Part shown: positions 9,434 to 61,700 of the stretch, in pieces | How positions within the stretch are numbered: position 1 is the first letter of the stretch | Layout: each line of letters begins with the position of its first letter | Assembly (NCBI GenBank): GCA_965202585.1 | Contig: OZ241833.1 | Span: forward strand, 5,084,001-5,148,000 | Length of the DNA stretch: 64,000 nucleotides | Reading direction: 5' to 3' | Source of the DNA: Thalia democratica | Lineage: Eukaryota | Made by a program: the position numbers and the translations under genes | The notes under the pieces: generated by a model | Seen by the model: only the letters and a program-made list of their open reading frames with translations | The model's database searches: none | Told to the model about the DNA's origin: nothing

Positions 9434-12400
9434 TTAAGCTTTTGGCTTTCTAAAGTAAGTTGGTAACATTAATTTAGAACTTTGATTCTTTGTTTTAGAG
9501 TTGTTGTCTTGTATTTTTGCGGAGTTATTTTCATTACTGCTTTCATGAATGTCAACTTTACTTTTGAAAATTGAGCTAACTTTTGTTTTTAGATTATTTT
9601 TCTTATCTTTGACTCCAGTTTTATCGTTTTCCTCTGTTTTGTAGACTTCAATAGTTTTTGGTTCTTCTTTTATTTTATTGACTTCAATAGTTTTTGGTTC
9701 TTCTTTTGTTTTGTAGACTTCAACAGTTTTTGGTTCTTCTTTTATTTTATTGACTTCAATAGTTTTTGGTTCTTCTTTTATTTTATTGACTTCGATAGTT
9801 TTTGGTTCATCTTTTATTTTATTGACTTCATTAGTTTTTCGTTCTTCTTTTATTTTGTTGTCTTCATTATTGTTTGGTTTATCTTTTATCATGTTGTCTT
9901 CATTAGTCTTTGGCTCATCTTCTACTATGTTGTCTTCATTATTGTTTGGTTCTTCTTCTTTAGTTTTTCTCCAGTCACCTTCCTTTATTTTTTTCTTACG
10001 AAACGTAAACTTTTTCTTTGCCGCTTTTAAACCTTTAATTTTTAGGTTTTGAGGATATAATTTCAATGTTTCTTAAGATAATGTTTATTACTATTATTTT
10101 TTACAAAAATTTCAACACGACTATGATAAAGTTTTAAAACAGAAATAAATTTGGTAAAAAAGTCTTTGGAGGTTTATAATCTAATAGTAAAATAGAATTT
10201 AGTTTTTGAAGAATTTCAGTAAAACTAACTTAGTCAAGCACTGTTAAAAAATAAAAACACTGTTCACTATTCTTATATGTCTAATTGTAAAAACTAAGAA
10301 AGAAAAATGTCTTAAAGACTAAAAAATTTAGTTTGTTGAACTTAAATTATACCATATTATAGATATAAACTTTTATTATTCTAGAACTTTTGAGAATTCA
10401 TTTTACAAATATTTTGTATTTATAAGTTATTAAAATTTTAATATTATTAATAAAACTTACTGTTGTTCTCTGTATGTGTCAGGTATAAATTTAAAAAACA
10501 AGTATTTATAAAAAACCTTTAGCGCGTTTTTCCTCGGCAACCTCGAAATCTTCATCAAATTTATCATCTGCTTCCTTTTTAGCTCTGTCATAACTTTTTC
10601 TTGCCTTGTAGTGTTCAAACTTTTTGTCTAGCTGTTCACTTTCTTGCTGAAACACTTGTTCAGCTTCAACTACTGCATTATCACACTTTTCTTTAGCCTT
10701 GTTTATTTCTACTCGATACATGCTATCGTTGAAACTTCCCGACAGCTTTTATAAAGTTATTTTTAGTTGAAACAAAAGTTATTAAAAAAATGTAAAAGCT
10801 TTAAATGAAAAAGGTTTTTCAGGTATTTTTTACAACAGTTTTATAAATTATTAATGTACAAGTTTTTTATATGATCTTCTGTTTATTATCCACGTTGGTA
10901 AGTGTATTAGCCACGAGCGTTGGTGCTTTTACAACAACGCCAAACAAAAATTAAGTTGAAAAAAAGAAAAGTTTACAAACTTAAACTATTTGAAAATTTC
11001 TTCAGCTTTATTTCATGTGTTAGCAAGTATTTCAAATTTGTTATGGAAATTTTAAAGTTTCAAAAGCAAAAGAAAAAACTATTAAAGTATAGTAAATAAA
11101 GTGTGTAGAATAATTAAACTGTCGCTCATTTTACTATATATCAATTTTTATATTGTATATTGTATATGTAATATAACTATATATATGTATATAGTTTACA
11201 TTAGTTTTGTGTACTCAAATACTTTCTTAACAATGAAAAATCTGAAACGAGATATAAATATAAACATTGAAAATTTAGTAAAATGAGATAAAGTTCAACT
11301 ATTCTACAAAGTGTTGTTAAACAATAAACTAAATTTTACTTTTGGTGAAATTTTTTTGAAAAATACAAGATCTTTATAGCAACTTAGACAGCTTATTTTT
11401 GAAATAAAATTCAACATGACAGATAAATTTCTAATATCTAAATACTACAATTTGTTTCAATAGTATCTTTAAGACATAACTCTTGAAGAAGATACAAAAA
11501 AACTTTCAGTTTTGGTATTAAAAAAAAAGTTTACTTTGCTAGTGTTAGTAACTAACATAGCATCTAACTTACTGTTACTTATAAATAAATTTCAAATTTA
11601 AATGTTTTAAACATTTAAAAAAAAAATCATAAAAAGTTTATTCAAAATATAAAGTACTTTAAAATAGTTTATTTATGATTTGATATCTACTTTTGTTTTT
11701 AGTTATAACTATTTAGACAGCTACAACAAATAAAGCACTCTATGTTAAAAAATTATTAGTAAAATAGTTACAATAATTACAAATTTAAACAGTATTCTTT
11801 CTTTATTACACTAAAATATGTTTCTGTGTTTTAACGGATTAACACACTTTAACGGAGCTCTGTAAAAAAATAATTACTATAAAAAAAGAATAGAAGCTAA
11901 AGAAATTATAAATATTTGTTTATTTAAATAAAAATAAATACTATAGATTATTGTAGATTAATGGTTAATAAAGATACAATACAATTAACAGTACTAATCA
12001 ATACAATACAGGTATCTGTTATTAACCATAAGTCTACAATAATCTATAGTATTTATTTTTATTGTTAATAAACACATATATATACCTAAAGTAGCTTCCA
12101 TTCTTTTCTTACAGTATTTATTTTTCTACAGAGCTCCGTTGAAGTGTGTTAACCAGTTAACACACAGAAACATGCCTTAGTGTAATAAAGAAAGAATACT
12201 GTTTAATTTCTTATCATTGTAAATTCCACCGAACATGTTTCGCTAGGATCTCTATCAAAAAACCCTTAAATTTATATTTTCAATAGTTGAAATAACTATA
12301 TAAATACAAACCTCAGTGGAATATTCATAGTCTGTTTGATCTTTTTTGTTTTTATTTAATTTTCTTTGCACGACCTGTTCAAAAGAATTTTTTGTTCAAC

Positions 12401-15400
12401 ACGTTGTTACAAAAGCAAACTTTGTGGAATTTTTTTTATAGTTGACACATTTAAATGAGTTAAAATTTCAAAATAATACCTTTGGAAGAAATCTCTTGCG
12501 TGGTTTAACTTTTGGAAATTGCTGACCACTGTCATTTTCTCGGAAAGAACCTTTTGCTAAATGAATTTTGATTTATTCTTGATATAAGTTTTAACAGATT
12601 TTTCTTGATCTTATAAAACCAAACTCAAAAGTTACGCAGGTTAACAGAACTTAATAAATTTTCTGTGTTGTTTTTGAGTAGTTAACTTGAATTTAAGCTT
12701 ATTTTATGTATCTTTTGATTTAAATTTTTTAAATTTCAAAGTTCTTCATCGATAACCAAACTATAAACTTTATAAAAGGGTTACATGACAATTCAAATTT
12801 GGACAACTCAAATTCGGACAATTCAAATTTTTGAAAAAATATTAAACACTATATCTCAAAAAGTAATATAAATTTGAAAAAAAAAGAAATAAAGCATATG
12901 AAGATCATGTTAAAACCTACAAGCCACTTTTTCGTTTTTGCAAAATCTTAACTATTATTTAAGATATTTTGATATTACTAAAAATAAGTATGTTTTTTTA
13001 AGCCATATCTCAAAGAATATTTAATATTTTGCAATAAGAAAAAAAACAGCTAAGATATAATATGACCTACATATGTATTTCTTATATTTGACAAATATGC
13101 ATTACTTTTTTAGTTGTGCCTCTTTCAATTTTTTTGTAAGAATTTGAATTGTCGGAATTTGAATTGTCCGAATTTGAATAGTAAATAATTTTATAAAAGT
13201 ATAAGTTTAAGTTTGTAGAAAGTATTTACGAATTTTTACCTTTACTGTTGCCACCAATGAGATCTGGCAATTTCCAGCCAACTACCAATGAAATTACCAG
13301 TATTACGACCGCCACCGTATAAATAATAAAAAATGATCCATTCGACGATAAAAAAGATATTGGTTCATCTGTTTAACAGTTATATTAAAAAAGAAACAGT
13401 TTTATAAAACATTAAAGTACTATTTTTAGTATTTAAATGATTTATTAAAATACACAATAACTTTACTACTTTTAACTTAAAAAAAAATTAAAGAGTTTTG
13501 TCAAATTAACAGCAATAATATAAAGTACAAACCACATTCTTTTTATATAAAAAGTAATAATTTACCAATTCCATTGTACTGATTGCTTTCTGGTATGTTT
13601 TCAAGCAAATGATTCACGATTCTACTCAAGGAGCTCTGTTGAAGACCATTGTTGTCAATGAACAGTTGGGCAACTGTTTTTGGATCTTGGCCAAGTTTAT
13701 ACTCGAACTTTAAAAACGGTCCTTCGCTTTTGGTGTCAATCAGAAACTCGTAAAACTTAGTTTCTGCATTAGATATTAATTATAGATAACTCTAATTTAT
13801 TTTTGAAAAAATTAATTATATTTCTTTATAAGTTTTCATACATAAGTAAGTTTTTTTATTAAGTACTCTTTTATTAATGAAACTTCTTTGAAGCTTTTCA
13901 AAAATACTTTGTCTTTGAAAACTTTTAAATTACGTAAAAAATCATTTCCTGCGAAGTTCTTGTTTTTTCTATGTAAAATTCATTCATATAAATAACCTTT
14001 AAAACGTTTATTTTTATGGGTTTACTTGATTATTTAGTTCGACATGAACTAAAGTTCTTTAAACCTTAAACCTATTTTTGCAGAAAAAAAATACTACGAT
14101 GTTCTCGTACTATCAAAACATTTATATACCATTTGAAATAAGTATATAGATTATCGAGGTTACACATTTTTATCTTTATTTAGTTTCACAAACATTTTGA
14201 AAACTATACAAAACTAATGGGCTACCCATTGCAACACAGTCTATTTGTTTATAGATTTTTCCACCGTAAAGGAAAATACTTTGGGAGCACAACTGTAAAT
14301 GTTTCTTAATGTATTTTGAGTAATTTTGGTTTCTTTGAAAATTGATTTGATATTTGTGTCATAAATTGTTGTTAATATGCCTTCGATTACTTCTTTTAGT
14401 GGAACGTGAATATATAGGCTTTTGATGTCTAAATAGCAAATCGTTTGAATGTTTTATATTTAGCTTAAACATTTTGTTAACAAATTCATTTGATGATGAA
14501 ACATTATATTTATCATACAAGCAAAATTTTTATTTGTTTTTCTAACCATTTAGCTAGATTGTTCTCTAGAGTGTTGATAACTGATAGTACTGATCTTTTT
14601 AGATAATTTTCTTAGGATGTTTTTACTACACCATATAATTTTCCCGGTTGTGAATCACGTGGATATATGTTATAATAGGTTTTTTGGCTTACTATATTTT
14701 TAGTATAATTTCTGCAATAGTAAATTACTTTGTTTTCTTGTATAATCCACGGGCTGATTTGCAATCTTTTGTGTTGATGAACTAGGATTATACTTATTTC
14801 TTCAAAACGGTTTTTGTCTAGAACAATTTTGTCTAACTTTTTGAAATAATCCGAATTATTTAAGACAACAACTCCATTATTCATTTTACATACAACTGTT
14901 GATGAGTTTCTTAAAAGGTTGCAAGTGTTTTCATTTATTTTGAAAAAGTCTAGAATAGTTTTGTCTAACTTGTTGAAATTATCCTTATTTAAGAGTCTAT
15001 ATTGGCACGTAATTTAACTTTGTCTATGTTTCTGGGTTAAATGCTATGTTTAAGTCCATATTTAAGAGCATTGTTTTCAGTAAGAAGTTGTTTCATATGT
15101 AAGTTTTCAAATAAGAACTTATAGAAATTAAAAATCAAAAATAAGTTGAACATAAATGTGACTCACACTGTCTTAATGTGCAGGATTGGGTAAACTTTTC
15201 TTATAAAACTTTTCTTTTGAAAACAACGTTAATAAGTATTTTTTTTGTAATTTATGGAAAGAATGAATAGGTACTGTAACTGTAAATAAATCAGTTTGTT
15301 TTTTACATATTGTAGTTCTTAATCCTTTAATAATACTTAAAAAGTTGATAAGGATTTTTTGAAAACTCTTTTAAACGAGTATTTTTCCTAAAATACTTAA

Positions 15401-15670
15401 CTGGTGATCACCAATGATCAAACAAAAATGTGAGTTACATTGTCTCACAGTGAATTAAAACTTATTTTTTAAATGCAAGTTTATGTATACTTTTTATTTT
15501 ATCTATAGAAATATAAACACCTACTATAAACTACTTAGTAATACTTATTAAGTAAAAAAATCCAAGCAACTTCTTTGGTATAACAGTACATATAATACTT
15601 GCCAAAAATACTAAAATAAAAAATATTTAAATGAAAACGTACCTGCTGTATTTCTTTCTGTTAAGTTCAT
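9434..15670 (-). CDS. Putative single-pass membrane protein with an N-terminal PFU-like (PLAA/Doa1 ubiquitin-binding) domain and a Lys/Glu repeat tail, about 440-460 aa
   Basis: Exons (minus): 15670-15643, 13763-13566, 13368-13240, 12556-12480, 12374-12312, optionally 10925-10860 (weak donor), 10745-10517, 10032-9434; phases match. Exon 2 (FYEFLIDTKSEGPFLKFEYKLGQDPKTVAQLFIDNNGLQQSSLSRIVNHLLEN) aligns without gaps to the PLAA PFU as I recall it. Exon 3 has a 21-aa hydrophobic run (SFFIIYTVAVVILVISLVVGW). The exact 5' and 3' ends are less certain. Confidence 0.7.
9630..9965 (-). repeat. Coding 36-bp minisatellite (12-aa unit IKEEPKTIEVNK), about 9 units
   Basis: Visible in ORF 9434-10066; the + strand repeats ttgacttcaatagtttttggttcttcttttatttta. 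Confidence 0.9.
11785..12206. mobile_element. Foldback/hairpin element with arms of about 200 bp
   Basis: ttaaacagtattctttctttattacacta... mirrored by ...tagtgtaataaagaaagaatactgtttaa, with a spacer of about 30 bp. A single-arm relic lies near 58925-59047. Confidence 0.85.
12778..13189. mobile_element. MITE with 12-bp subterminal repeats and 8-9 bp TSD (Mutator- or Merlin-like)
   Basis: Left gggttacatgac plus three ggacaattcaaatt-like units, mirrored on the right; flanks (t)ttataaaa on both sides. A related end lies at 37150-37210. Confidence 0.8.
14080..15120 (-). mobile_element. Decayed Penelope-like retroelement, reverse transcriptase fragment (in intron 1 of the PFU-TM gene)
   Basis: Frameshifted and stop-interrupted motifs IYPRDSQPGKLYG, YLDIKSLYIHVPLKEVI and a degraded equivalent of VAMGSPL, typical of PLE RTs. 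Includes track ORF 14612-14884. Confidence 0.8.
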
Positions 15671-16899
15671 TTAATTTATCTTCTTAGAACTGGTGCTGAT
15701 ACTTTTTTTTAATTAGATCAAATTATAGCATAAAATATTTTTGATCAAAATGCAGTTATTTTATTTTGAATTAAAAATAAGTTTTTTAAATCATATCATT
15801 GATAAACGTCATAAAAGATGCTTAATTATAGAAAAAGTTTCACTTTATAACCTTACAAAAATATTTTAGATTACTTTCTGGTGAAAAAATCTAAATTTTT
15901 GCTTGAAAAATCCTTGGAAGGAAAAACAATATGGCTACAGTTATATAGCTGGCTGGATTATTTTCAAATCAAAGTTCTTATAAATAAAGCTTCTCAAAGT
16001 CTAGCAGCTATTTTGAAACTTATGCTTTTTTTTAAGACTAGACGCATTTTGAGTTAAGTACAAAAGTTTAAACTGTGGCAACTTTGATAACTGAAATTAA
16101 TGTAATGAAAAATGTTTAAAGTATGGTAACAAAAAAATTAGCTAGAAAAACTTTATCGGAATTCTTTCTTAGTTCTCATATATTTTATCTAAAGAACAAC
16201 AGAGCTTCTGTTAAAGCTAACAGACATGAAAAACAAACTAATTTGTGTTGAGTTTTCAAAAGATTACAGACTAAAAATGAAATTAATTATTTCAGTGTTA
16301 GTGATAAACATTTAGAACGTATATCTTAATTTTAAGCTTGATTCACTAAAACTTTGAATGACTAAATCAAACCGTTTCTCCAACTATACAAAATTTTATT
16401 TCAAAGTTTAAATCGCAACATCAATTAGAGTCCTTAGGACACTATTCTGATTAAGTGCTATAAATAATAGACAGATTTATTTTTGAATAAGTGGTCTACA
16501 GATCAACAAATAAGAGTCCATATCATTTTTAGAAGTATAATTCCGTTTAGCTAGAAATTTTCAAAACAGTGAATGCTAAATTGTTTGCATCTTCTTTTTT
16601 AGCTAACAAACAGTATTTTTTAAGAGATTAATTATTTTTTCAAATTTTGTCAGCACTTTAATAGAGTAAAGAAATATTTGGTTAATTAATTAAGCAATAA
16701 AAAAACTCCATTAAAGTTTGAACAAAAAAAAATACACAAAAAACAAAAATAATTATAATTGTATGTCATGTATAGAAGTGCGACTATGATCCAAACCATC
16801 GACATGCTCTTTTTAAAAAATCAGTTAAAAAAACATTGCAAACAAATTATTAGATGAAAGTTTGCTATTGCGGTTTTAGTTAAATACATTTGTATACTT

Positions 16900-19321: not shown

Positions 19322-22300
19322 TTACTGGCAGGCAGCTTCTGCGAATTGTACTATTTCCTCCAAAACGTCAGCAGCATCGTCGTAGCATCTCTGCTCGTCA
19401 CGCCTGCTCTGATTGGTCGGCTCATCACGGGTACTCTGGTCAATCAGCTCCTCATTGGCGCCCTGGTTTGTCTGCTCGTCACGCCTGCTCTGATTGGTCA
19501 GCTCCTCATCGGCGCTCTGATTGGTCACCTCCTCATCAGCGCTCTGATTGGTCGGCTCCTCATCGCTGCTCTGGTTGGTCATCTCCTCATCGCTGCTCTG
19601 GTTGGTCATCTCCTCATCAGCGCTCTGATTGGTCGGCTCATCATCGGCGCTCTGTAAAATTAAATAGAATATGAATATTTGCTATTGCACTTTTATTAAT
19701 TTGGATAACTTTTTGAACAAACTAGATATGTTTTCCTTAATTAGAAATTTGCGTTAAAGTATTTAAATTCCTTTTTAATTGGTTTTAATACCTTAAAACC
19801 TGAAATTTTTCAATACTAAATTAAAAACACCATAATCATCTACCTAATTACATTCTTCAGTGATGTAGAGGAGTTTTGGTAGAGTTACAGTATCTAGATA
19901 CGTGATATGTATATATGCTGTTTTATAAATCCCGCTTGTAAAATTTATAACTTGTAACATTACATTTAACTAGTTCTTAAACTCCTTAATACTCCGTAAT
20001 AGTGTTATAAGCAAACAGTAAAAACGCACCAAAGCTTGCGGAAGACCAGTAGCCTTGTCATGTTTGTCTTCATGCAAACTTACTTCATTGGCGCTCTGTA
20101 AAATTAAATACAATAAATATATATCGATTTCTCAAATTTCAGGTTTTCCAGGATTGCAGGTTTTTTGTCCACCCTGTATAGATCTACAGTTTTTTTTTTA
20201 TTTAGTTCTTAAATTCATTTGGTGATTTAACACAAGTATGCATGTATCATATTTAATTCAACCTCAAGCGAATACGTAGTACAAATAGTGGAAAGATTAC
20301 CCACCAAAACTTGCGGAAGACCAGAAACGTCATCATCTTTAGTGGCATCTTCATCATGTTTGTCTTCGTGCAAACTTGCTTCATTGGCATCAGCTGAATG
20401 TGAGGACATATTTTCTTCTTGCATTGAAGCATCATTTGGAGCATTGAAAGTTTTTCTTGGCTTATTGCAACCTTCGTTTTCTATAGATAATTTAAATAAT
20501 TTACTTGAAGAATTCTTCCTTTTTTTGATTCTGCCTGTTTAGACAAGAATTACTTACTAGCTTGACATAATAGCTTGCACTTTTTAATTACTTTTATAAA
20601 CTTAAACGCTTTCTATAAATTACATATATTGGTTAGTTAGTTCAAAAGGTATATTAAAAATGCATGGAAATTTTAAAAACATTAGACTGTTATAAGCCCT
20701 AAAACAAGATTTCAAACAATTAACATTATAATTATAAATATATAAACTTTTAACACTTCAAGTAGAGATAAACTTTATGCTAAAACACCTTAGCATAAGT
20801 TATAGAGTTTACAAGTTTTCTATCAAAACAGCAAGACTTACGTAAACTTTCGTTTGTAAGTGTTATTTTGTTTTTTTCACGCCACTCCAACGTACGATTC
20901 TTAGTGAGGACTGGACGGTTGTCTACTTCATCGAGGCATTTTTCCTGTAAATCAGCAGTTTTTCAAGAAAATATAAATACATTATTATATTCGTAACAGC
21001 AACTATTTATCATCAACTTAGAAATAGCACAATTGGTGCTCTGATAAAAAATTATCGATTTGTTTGAATAATCTTACACTGTTACGGTTTAATACATTTC
21101 TTGGCATAACCTATGTATCTAAACTAAGTAAGTATTGTGAATAGTTGAATAATTTAAATTTTAGGCGGAAGACAACCAAGTCCGGCTAGATATAAAAAGA
21201 TTGTATATTTGTTTGAAAATAGTTAATAATATGTTATGTTTCAATTACTTTAATAAAGATATTTATCAAATAATTTCAATTTATACTACCTCCGCTGCTA
21301 CACTTTCCACTTCATTTGCATTTTCTTTTTCAGCAATTTTTTCATGCGATGGTTGCTTATCTTCGATCGAGAAAATTCTAGAAAGTATTTATTTTCTTAA
21401 GCTTTTATACTTTTTTAAACAAATATTTACATACAAAACATATACATAAAATTTTTTAAGAATCCATCTGTTATTGAAATTAAAGAAATGTTTTTCTACT
21501 TAATTGCAAATTTACAAGCTTATGTCATGAGAACTTACAGAGATGAATTCGCATTGCTAGTCTCCAACGTTTCCAGCGATGCGTCGGCTTCCTTGGTGTC
21601 TACTGCCACTTCGCTTTCTTCATTGGTATCTTCTGCCAGCTTGCCTTCTTCCTTGGGGTCTACTGCCATTTCGCTGTCTTCATTGGTGTCTTCTGCCATT
21701 TCGCTGTCTTCATTGGCGTCTTCTGCCAGCTTGCCTTCTTCATTGGGGTCTACTGCCATTTCGTTGTCTTCTGCCAGCTCGCTTTCCGTTGTGCTCATGT
21801 TCACTTCTTCCTTCTCATCTGAGACGTGAGCGCTTTGCGTGGAAGTTTCTTCATCTGCGGTGCTCTCTTCTTCAACTTCACTCGTCTGCTCCTGGCAGGC
21901 CGGTTCGTTTGCACCATCGTTGACTACGACGCCGTCTGCTCCACCGCTGATGTTAAGATTCTCATCTGAATTTTCCACGTTTTCGCTTGAAGCGGTTTCT
22001 TCGGTTGCTTGAGCTTTACTTGTTATTTCAGCAACCACCGCCTTCAGTGATGACAGCTCTTCTTGCACCTTCTTCATGTACTTATCAGAACAAGCCTTCT
22101 CGAACTTCTCCAATCTCTTCTCTGCGTGTTTTAAAATAAGTTACTACTTTTGAAAGAACAAACAAATCAAATTTGGTGAGTTAAAACTACCCAATTGGGC
22201 TTCAACTTCCTTCTTAGCGAGCTTCTTCACTTCTATCTGCAACGAATTTTGGTGTTGCTCCATTACCTTCTTTAGTTTATCTGTAAGAATTACATTTATC

Positions 22301-58700: not shown

Positions 58701-61700
58701 AATAAATTTGAATCAGTTATTTTTTCCACTGAAGTAAGTGGTTTGTTTATATTATGATTTGTTGTTTTGTTGTGTATTTTAGTTTACTTTACATATTTTA
58801 GACTTAATAAATACAAATATTATATAGTTTTATAACAGTCGGATTTAACATTTAGTATTTTACCTATTATCAAATATTACCTGTATAAATCTGTAGAAAT
58901 TATTTTATTTTAAAGAAAACATGTACACACCTACTTTATTCTATGCTTCTATTCTTACACTACAGTAATTATTTTTTTTCAGAAATCAGTTGAAGTGTGT
59001 TGATTCGTTAACACACAGAAACATATGTTGGTACAATAAAGGAAGATTAATGTATAGCTTTTTTTTAATTTTTTTTTTTGTTAATTAAACTAAAAGAGTT
59101 TAAAAAGTTCATAAAAACAACCTTAAAAATATGAAATAATTAACAAAAATTAGGCTTAAAGTCGTTAAAACTAACTTGTTTTATCTGAAAAAAATCAAAA
59201 GACCTTAAGAGTTTTAAACTCACTTAAACTTCTGAAGTAATCTTTAGCCACAATATAAAAGCATAAAAAATTTAAAATAAAATATATGTCAATAGATATA
59301 CTTTCGTGAGTCAAGCAAGCTTATGGGTATTTTTGTAAAACTTTGTTTTTTTCAGTAGAATTTTTTTTTAACAAGCCAGATCAATTTACACTTTAAAGTA
59401 CAACTTTTAAGTGCATTCAATATACACGCTCACTTTAGATTATTCAACTTTTTCAAATATCTACAAATGCAGGGTGTGTGAAAAGGATATGATTGTTTTT
59501 TTAACTGAATATTGTAAATTAGACATCTCATACTTTAATACTGGTTTAACACAGGAAACAAATCAAAAACAAATTGAAGATTCACATTTGATTACATGTT
59601 TAAGAATATATTTATTACAAATTTACAGTTACTCAGTTTCACAACAAACAGGATTTTAAAACTACTATTCTGAAATAAAAAACTATGCAAGTCTTCTTTT
59701 TCAATATCGGTAAAAGTTGAACTGAAAAATTAAACATGTAGTATAAATTTGAGTATTATATAATGGCTAATTAGGTAATCATAAAGAAATAAAATTAAAA
59801 TATATAAAAGAAAATTGATTAGTTAATACTAACAATTAATTACACTAGTATCTAAAAACAAATTTGAAGAGTTAGTCATTTTATTAATTTTTTATTACAG
59901 AATCTTAGTTTTAAAAATCCGTTTGTGGAACTGAGTAACTGTAAATTTTGTAATAAATGTATTTGTAAAGACATCTTATCTTTAGTTAAAAAGCATTGGC
60001 TACAGCTCATTAGAACTTGGACTTGTTTTTTTTTAGTTTTTAGATTATATGTTTAGTGTCAAAAACAGATCATTTAAGTAAAGCTAGCAGTAAAATAAAA
60101 CATTAAAGATCATCAATAATTAAGGTGAACCAAAAAATACTTATTAGAAAACTTTTAAGACCTCAGGAGATCAAAATATTTTTATACAAAAACGTTGGCT
60201 CTTATTTGAAAGCTATAGAACTATAAAATACTTTTTAAACAACTAAAAAAGTCAGTAAGTTTTGAAATATAACACAATTTGTAAAGAAAGTCCAACACTA
60301 CCTGTATTATATAGAAAAACAAATTTTTATGGTCAATTTTCTCAGAACTTTGAAAAGTGTAGTAAAAATAATTTTCTTATATATTTATGAAGCAATTTAC
60401 TTTATGTTGTTAGGAAATTTTCATTCCAATACTACTAACAACTTGTAGGACGCGTAATTTTAAAAAAAGTTTAAAAATTTTATGAGCAATGTTAAAAAGA
60501 AAAAACTTTTTTGTTTTGTTTTATAAAACAAAATAAATTGCTTCCTATATGTTGTTCAAAATTTATTTAAGATTATACTGATTAAGTTTTAAAGCAACTG
60601 CTCAAAGGAGAAGACGGATTTTTAGTAAAGTATTTTGTTGTTTTAGTTTGCAACTCCCATAAAGAACCTTTTGAACTCTCTAAATTTGATTGCTTTTATC
60701 TTAAAGATATTATGATCTTTTTAAAATTGTTTAAAAACAGTTTACAGCTAAATATTATACTTATGAATACTATATTAATTTTAAAAAAAGTTATTTACCT
60801 CCCCTAGGCCTTCGACTAATAAGAATAACAAAATTGATTAACAGGAGATATTAAAACACCATAGCTTTTTTATAACAAATTTAACTATCCGAGTTAAAAA
60901 AAAAATCAAACTATTACAAAGTCTAGTCTGAAATTCCTATAAACTTTTAATAAAAATAATATGAATAGAAATCGTGTAGTATTAGTGCTCTTAAATATTT
61001 TTTTTTAAACTAGCTAATAATGGTTTAGTTAAGCTATAAAAAACCAGGCTTAGATATATATTATTTTTATTTGTGCACTTTGATAGTATTTTGTTATATT
61101 TATTTCATTTTGCTTAAGACTTAAACTAGACAAATAAACTAGAAAATTCTTAAAAACAATTAAGCATATAAACAGTAAACCTCTAAAATCATCAATCAAT
61201 TGAAGTACTGAAATTCAAAAATATTTTAAACTACAAACATTAATTTATCTAAATCATAAAACTTTTTGAATCCTTAAAAATAGCATGAGGGATTACCACT
61301 TATTTAACAAGCTTTAGATATGTATAATTAATTTTATTAACAAATTGAAACAACAGCATAGTAACAATTATTGACAATTACAGGGTTGCCAAATTTTTTT
61401 GAGAAATTCCTTCCAGGTTTTCTGAATTTTTTCTAGGTTTTTAAATAATAGTTTAGGGTCTATTTTAAGTTTAAAGGTAAGTTTAAGATTAAAAACTGTG
61501 CTAAGTAGTATAACAACATTGAAAAGATACTGTAAAGTTTCTTTAAATATATTTTAATAAAAAACTATTTTGATGATGACAAAAACTTTTTATCTATGTT
61601 ATAGATTTTTAAGTCAAATTGAAATTTCACTACTTAACATGTAAATTGCTTAAAATTCTGGAATTTTCCAAATTTTTTAGCCTAAATTGTCAAATTCCAG

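Follow-up and report, generated by a model that had tools for sequence, protein, structure and literature searches.

We report a gene on the minus strand of a 64,000-nucleotide stretch of the Thalia democratica genome (contig OZ241833.1, positions 5,084,001 to 5,148,000; hereafter the window, to which all coordinates refer and whose G+C content is about 25% throughout), the predicted 440-residue product of which combines a lone PFU domain with a single transmembrane (TM) helix. In PLAA/Doa1/Ufd3 the domain is part of a WD40-PFU-PUL layout (PMC2804184), and it has been described as unique to the PLAA family (PMC12232612). The reading that we favour, with a probability of roughly 0.6, is that of a selectively maintained, salp-restricted, single-pass membrane protein, the PFU unit of which was captured from a PLAA-type gene and the TM helix of which acts as a reverse signal anchor, leaving the N-terminus outside the cytosol. 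From N- to C-terminus, such a protein would comprise a 9-residue leader, the PFU unit, an acidic stalk, the TM helix, a basic linker, a charged two-helix region and a repeat tail. That the gene is real and has a PFU plus TM architecture we consider very probable, on the evidence that follows.

The gene extends from position 15670 down to 9434 in seven exons (Table 1), separated by introns that are all of the GT-AG type, and is read in a single open frame of 440 codons followed by TAA. Three of its junctions (15643/13763, 13566/13368 and 13240/12556) had been proposed in an original prediction made from the letters of the window alone, and all of them fit one open frame; three further junctions (12480/12374, 12312/10745 and 10517/10032) are added here. 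The terminal TAA lies at 9436-9434 and is overlapped by an AATAAA at 9435-9430. Another in-frame TAA, which the original prediction had also pointed out, stands immediately 5′ of the initiating ATG at 15670-15668.

The joining of these exons can be followed in three relatives, P0002 (305 aa), P0003 (406 aa) and P0017 (430 aa, with 418-aa variants), which have the same order of parts as the window protein and are encoded on Joint Genome Institute (JGI) metatranscriptome contigs of 1.0-1.4 kb from the open ocean. These contigs contain none of the six introns of the window gene and therefore represent spliced mRNA. Protein alignment shows the window model to be colinear with the relatives across all six junctions, in blastn every segment of the mRNAs falls on its corresponding exon, and the 5′ untranslated region (5′UTR) of one of these mRNAs, L001, aligns to the DNA directly upstream of exon 1. 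The PFU exon, the TM exon and the downstream exons are thus joined in that order in the mRNAs of the relatives, and mRNAs of the gene family have been recovered from several independent samples.

Table 1. Features of the PFU plus TM gene in window coordinates; dN/dS denotes the ratio of non-synonymous to synonymous substitution rates.
Feature	Coordinates	Strand	Description and evidence
5′UTR, minimum extent	15671..15730	-	contiguous with exon 1; blastn of mRNA L001 nt 4-84 to window 15730-15650, 82% identity
Exon 1	15643..15670	-	ATG 15670-15668, 9-residue leader, ends in phase 1; L001-homologous 5′UTR and start
Exon 2	13566..13763	-	one PFU unit; 198 nt, symmetric phase 1-1; Pfam PFU E 2e-7; dN/dS 0.07-0.20
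Exon 3	13240..13368	-	acidic pre-TM segment, predicted TM helix, start of basic flank; 129 nt, symmetric phase 1-1
Exon 4	12480..12556	-	basic juxtamembrane linker; open frame, AG/GT borders, colinear with mRNAs
Exon 5	12312..12374	-	basic linker; open frame, colinear with mRNAs
Exon 6	10517..10745	-	charged helical region, conserved; one conserved Cys; dN/dS 0.16-0.19
Exon 7	9434..10032	-	basic start, 12-aa K/E repeat array, poorly conserved tail; dN/dS 0.36-0.62
36-bp (12-aa) repeat array	9637..9957	-	inside exon 7; Tandem Repeats Finder

Whole-protein searches were run with exon translations or natural homologues as queries, and the window's own product was not among the matches from either of the two large protein collections. 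Further searches of a collection of 5.8 billion proteins, with P0003 and with the PFU plus TM part of P0002, returned only the same three clusters; a scan of metagenome contigs with the family alignment found nothing, and the look-alikes proposed by the ESM Atlas all scored at or below 0.55 and were uninformative. The family is very small and seems to be limited to a handful of tunicate taxa of the open ocean, apparently salps.

Assignment of the exon at 13763-13566 to the PFU domain, which the original prediction had made by pattern, is upheld by profile, sequence and structure comparisons. Its 65-residue translation matches the Pfam PFU model (PF09070) with an E-value of 2e-7 and 31.6 bits against a gathering cut-off of 26.2, over profile positions 57-110 of 113, and the relatives score 30.5 (P0002), 26.2 (P0003) and 26.0 bits (P0017, just under the cut-off). 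Compared with the human PLAA PFU chain 2k89, the exon yields an E-value of 0.003, and its identity amounts to 31% with human PLAA and reaches 42% with a PLAA-type fragment, P0014. A phmmer scan of 1.84 billion representatives gave 16 matches at E ≤ 0.001, the top three being the gene's own relatives; the best of the other 13 has an E-value of 6.5e-9, those examined further are all PFU/PLAA-type, and most of them contain one or two PFU-like units. Among these PLAA-type proteins (P0004-P0016), most, including the nematode entries P0004 (Panagrellus), which carries WD40, PFU and PUL by Pfam, and P0005 (Gongylonema), have two tandem PFU-like units of about 55 residues each. It follows that the 113 positions of the Pfam model cover some 1.5 to 2 units, and the salp exon matches half of the profile because it corresponds to one unit of the tandem pair seen in nematode PLAAs. 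This half is represented by the solution structure 2k89, the title of which identifies it as "PFUC", the domain of human PLAA that binds ubiquitin.

The AlphaFold2 model of exon 2, built on a 26-row alignment, has a mean predicted local distance difference test score (pLDDT) of 83.9 and folds as two strands followed by helices (strand-strand-helix-helix). Searched with Foldseek against the PDB, it retrieves 2k89 at rank 1, with a query-normalised template-modelling score (TM-score) of 0.73 and a root-mean-square deviation (rmsd) of 1.2 Å over 52 of the 65 residues, followed at ranks 2-4 by the yeast Doa1 PFU structures 3psp, 3pst and 3l3f; these four matches all have a probability of 1.00 and rmsd values of 1.2-1.9 Å over 52 columns. 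The strand-strand-helix-helix core is common to 2k89 and the salp unit, and about 28 further residues of the solved human construct are unmatched in the latter. Judged by sequence and predicted fold, exon 2 is one PFU unit of the PFUC type, for which ubiquitin binding is a prediction.

The rest of the PLAA architecture was sought and is absent, as the original prediction had maintained for WD40 and PUL. Eight PLAA-type proteins compared by tblastn with both strands of the whole 64 kb match only the PFU exon and reveal no WD40 and no PUL; Pfam detects no PUL in the exon translations either, and in the full-length relatives it reports PFU only, whereas the control PLAA, P0004, returns WD40, PFU and PUL (PUL E 1e-26). 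A mis-modelled or divergent PLAA orthologue, with WD40 and PUL exons located elsewhere and spliced in, would agree with PFU being the only detectable domain, since in animals this domain is otherwise known from PLAA. Such a gene is, however, already contradicted by the transcripts, and we regard it as almost certainly the wrong explanation: the mRNAs of the relatives begin 62-106 nt before the same ATG and end after the repeat tail, and the TAA adjoins the ATG in the window, L001 and L002. The shared 5′UTR and the in-frame TAA next to the ATG therefore exclude upstream WD40 exons from those transcripts. Having passed the PFU tests and lacking both WD40 and PUL, the salp protein is, on sequence grounds, classified as a PFU-containing protein that is neither PLAA nor a PLAA orthologue. 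It has in common with the p97/Cdc48 cofactor PLAA/Doa1/Ufd3/UFD-3 the PFU module, by sequence and predicted fold, but it possesses neither the N-terminal, seven-bladed WD40 propeller nor the C-terminal, armadillo-like PUL domain through which that cofactor binds the C-terminus of p97/Cdc48, and so has no known site for p97 binding. Its single PFU unit contrasts with the two in tandem of nematode PLAA, and, unlike the soluble PLAA, the salp protein is predicted to be membrane-anchored and to bear a long charged tail.

Residues 88-107, encoded by the exon at 13368-13240, form a single strongly hydrophobic segment with a mean Kyte-Doolittle value of 2.9 over 19 residues; the TM helix of the original prediction is thereby recovered, at a length of 20 residues instead of 21. 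Hydropathy shows no hydrophobic stretch in the first 87 residues, and no signal peptide was seen there. This exon is 85% identical to P0003 at the protein level. The basic linkers and the charged helical exon that had been described behind the TM helix are present as exons 4-5 and exon 6, the latter 77% identical to the protein P0003 and 86% identical in DNA to L001. In a model of the N-terminal half of P0003, which was built from three sequences only, has a pLDDT of 52 and was used for secondary structure alone, exon 6 corresponds to two long predicted helices (pLDDT 60-74). Pfam gave no significant match for exons other than exon 2; a DUF842 match with an E-value of 0.02, under the cut-off of that family, was rejected. 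The array of about nine lysine/glutamate-rich (K/E) repeats noticed earlier in exon 7 is resolved by Tandem Repeats Finder into 8.9 copies of a 36-bp period with 87% matches and a score of 418. Repeat copy number differs among relatives, and in the P0017 cluster (P0017-P0020) the mRNA variants of 430 and 418 aa are one repeat unit (12 residues) apart in length; this comparison, by length only, suggests variable repeat numbers within populations or between close ones.

Selection on the gene was measured as dN/dS by the Nei-Gojobori method, comparing the window with the mRNAs L001 and L002 and with a genomic contig, L004, and taking limits from 1000 bootstraps. For the PFU exon the three values are 0.20, 0.07 and 0.19, respectively, with 95% upper limits of at most 0.65, and dN/dS reaches 1 in none of the 1000 bootstraps against each mRNA and in 6 of 1000 against L004. 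PFU and TM taken together yield 0.17 against L001 (95% limits 0.08-0.30), 0.13 against L002 (0.06-0.26) and 0.17 against L004 (0.05-0.41); exon 3 by itself has values of 0.09-0.26, and the helical exon, compared with both mRNAs, 0.16-0.19 (upper limits ≤ 0.47). Across all comparisons the linker has dN/dS values of 0.28-0.97, given as point values, and the repeat tail values of 0.36-0.62 with upper limits of 1.07-1.59.

L004 belongs to a set of four Tara Oceans genomic contigs (L004-L007) that follow window 17576-8935 colinearly through exons and introns alike, at a DNA identity of 82-89%, and that constitute a sister locus. Missing from all four of these independent contigs are window positions 15304-13760, a segment that takes in about 1.5 kb of intron 1 and extends through the acceptor of exon 2 to the fourth base of that exon. 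The window shares E/V-T-K codons with the mRNAs at this point, which identifies the deletion in the L004-type locus as the derived state. A search of L004 for another acceptor, one compatible in phase 1 with the usual exon-1 donor, yielded none that fits. In L004 (L004:1700-2110) the deletion puts an ATG directly before the PFU strand, and the resulting open reading frame (ORF) has been called as P0001. Four indels, 6, 6, 12 and 33 nt long and each a multiple of three, separate exons 3-6 of L004 from those of the window, and the L004 tail has fewer repeats and an earlier stop. Synonymous divergence between the two loci (dS 0.18; proportion of synonymous differences, pS, 0.16) is like that of the introns (12-17%), and non-synonymous divergence is 0.06. 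With dN/dS low and the non-synonymous divergence from L004 far below the synonymous, the gene is kept by selection, most strongly on its PFU, TM and helical parts.

These data bear on the possibility that the gene is young and drifting or dying, a PLAA fragment having landed by chance next to a TM-coding gene and being transcribed without use. The small size of the family and its restriction to one lineage would suit such a history, as would the nearly neutral evolution of tail and linker and the loss of the exon-2 acceptor and gain of an early stop in L004. It is nevertheless very unlikely in view of the constraint on the PFU exon in all three comparisons, the frame that remains intact in at least four diverged forms of the gene, the L004 indels in exons 3-6, four out of four of which are in frame, and the recovery of mRNAs from several independent samples.

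Homologous mRNAs and purifying selection together support what the original prediction had presented as an unrecognised architecture, a stand-alone PFU with a TM helix and without WD40 or PUL. None of the findings that would have overturned that prediction (lack of a PFU profile or structural match, transcripts that leave PFU and TM unjoined, WD40 exons spliced in from upstream) was encountered. Searches of protein collections, and of the literature mentioning both "PFU domain" and "transmembrane", found no other membrane-anchored PFU protein and, PLAA apart, no other animal PFU protein. A lone PFU anchored in a membrane represents a new architecture around a familiar domain, all other known animal examples of which are in PLAA. 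We propose that the PFU unit was captured from a PLAA-type gene by exon shuffling, because it coincides with exactly one symmetric phase 1-1 exon and lies next to a TM exon that is likewise phase 1-1. Clusters of the AlphaFold DB contain PFU-like folds in protist proteins annotated as small GTPase, ZZ-type, EF-hand and glycosyltransferase, at 13-25% identity. Their likeness is at the level of the fold only, in unrelated, soluble-looking architectures; by the annotations in the match list none is a membrane protein, and none belongs to the salp family. As far as predicted models can tell, the PFU fold is thus not strictly confined to PLAA across eukaryotes, which softens the claim of uniqueness, and the protist folds suggest greater evolutionary mobility of the module than is stated in the literature.

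Under the charge-difference rule for signal anchors, the more positive flank of the helix is cytosolic. In all five family sequences the net charge is -1 to -2 in the 15 residues before the TM helix, 0 to +2 in the 15 after it and +3 to +7 in the 40 after it; a negative flank before and a positive flank behind the helix would therefore place the N-terminus outside and the tail in the cytosol. The original prediction had argued from flanking charge in the same direction, and of that argument the pattern stands, recurring in every sequence, while the strength of the bias proves only modest. One hydrophobic helix without a cleavable N-terminal signal peptide is, by hydropathy, as expected of a type III protein. 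The N-terminus reads MN-L-T-E and so contains an N-x-T sequon at residues 2-4, which is kept, as MNxTE, in four out of four full-length members of the family. Taken together, these sequence features incline us slightly towards an N-out orientation of the salp protein. The TM helix would then be a reverse signal anchor (type III, N-terminus out and C-terminus cytosolic), the PFU would face the lumen or the cell exterior as a protein-binding ectodomain and would no longer read cytosolic ubiquitin, and everything behind the TM helix (basic linker, charged helices and repeat tail) would serve in the cytosol as a spacer or scaffold. More tentatively, and with odds that we place a little short of even, the PFU, known only as a cytosolic reader of ubiquitin and ubiquitin-like proteins, may have been moved by exon shuffling to the exoplasmic side of a membrane in salps, where, perhaps glycosylated at Asn2, it would be the small ectodomain with which a new family of receptors or scaffolds binds its ligands.

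Several points weigh against the reading of a selected, N-out membrane protein. The transcript support consists entirely of mRNAs of relatives that are 77-82% identical in the PFU exon; the alignment behind the AlphaFold2 model is rich in PLAA PFU units, so that the match in fold cannot count independently of that in sequence; and, with its exon-2 acceptor lost and its tail shortened, the gene may be dispensable or remodelled in the L004 lineage. As regards orientation, the charge bias across the TM helix is modest. A further sequon (N-D-S or N-S-S), about 60 residues behind the helix, is conserved in all five sequences, and with sequons conserved on both sides, glycosylation motifs do not discriminate between orientations. 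An N-terminal domain of 87 residues that is able to fold alone is also long for translocation without a signal peptide. Finally, every known PFU ligand (ubiquitin, the Hse1 SH3 domain and the Wss1 N-terminus) resides in the cytosol or the nucleus (PMC12232612, PMC4559962).

The same gene may instead encode a type II protein, with the PFU cytosolic at the membrane as a tethered receptor for ubiquitin or a ubiquitin-like protein, devoid of the p97-binding PUL, and with the charged C-terminal part lumenal or extracellular. We hold this to be the less probable arrangement, though one of real weight. It would be in keeping with the PFUC type of the module, deposited as a ubiquitin-binding domain, with the cytosolic location of the known PFU partners, with the sequon behind the TM helix and with the resistance that a folded N-terminal domain may offer to translocation. 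It is opposed by the charge pattern, negative before and positive after the helix in every member and reaching +3 to +7 over 40 residues, and by a 330-residue, K/E-rich and nearly Cys-free repeat region that would be more typical of cytosolic proteins. The affinity of the PFU for ubiquitin, only about 1 mM in PLAA (PMC4828692, PMC12232612), also speaks against a ubiquitin receptor.

The N-out arrangement that we favour has a possible analogue in ER proteins that are anchored by their N-terminus and carry basic repeats and coiled coils, for example the ribosome-binding p180/RRBP1 and kinectin. Their plan is similar: a short N-terminus on the exoplasmic side, which has no signal peptide, and a single TM helix are followed by a cytosolic basic region, short tandem repeats and long helices. 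This is an analogy of overall plan, and Pfam and the ESM Atlas found no sequence similarity to these proteins; moreover, they have few lumenal residues, whereas the salp protein would expose a folded 87-residue N-terminal domain.

The role of the PFU domain in vivo is still unclear because its binding to ubiquitin is so weak. A lone PFU that is membrane-bound and that purifying selection maintains without WD40 or PUL beside it would constitute a natural case of separation of function, and the salp protein can reveal what a single PFU does alone and whether non-ubiquitin ligands exist. It would also offer a clean, datable case of gene birth by capture of one symmetric exon in a fast-evolving chordate lineage and, if the exoplasmic reading is true, an instance of a ubiquitin-binding-domain fold at work where no ubiquitin system exists. 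Its practical reach is limited, since the family appears confined to salps.

The surroundings of the gene contain a number of other elements. Upstream, at 19322-22113 on the minus strand, lies an apparently separate gene with long acidic S/T/E/D-rich tandem repeats and a G+C content of 0.33-0.34, in which no Pfam family was detected. Within intron 1, at 14300-15000 on the minus strand and inside the 1.5 kb missing from L004, broken ORFs without a Pfam match resemble remnants of mobile-element proteins. Intron 3 harbours, at 12788-13182, an element like a miniature inverted-repeat transposable element (MITE), with 59-nt terminal inverted repeats built of 15-bp tandem units; the absence of this element from L004 marks it as a recent insertion. 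A foldback element, about 430 bp long, occupies positions 11782-12209 in intron 5, with 153-nt arms that are 84% complementary and an inner 45-nt pair that is 96% complementary; it is also found in L004, and a related copy lies at 58855-59085.

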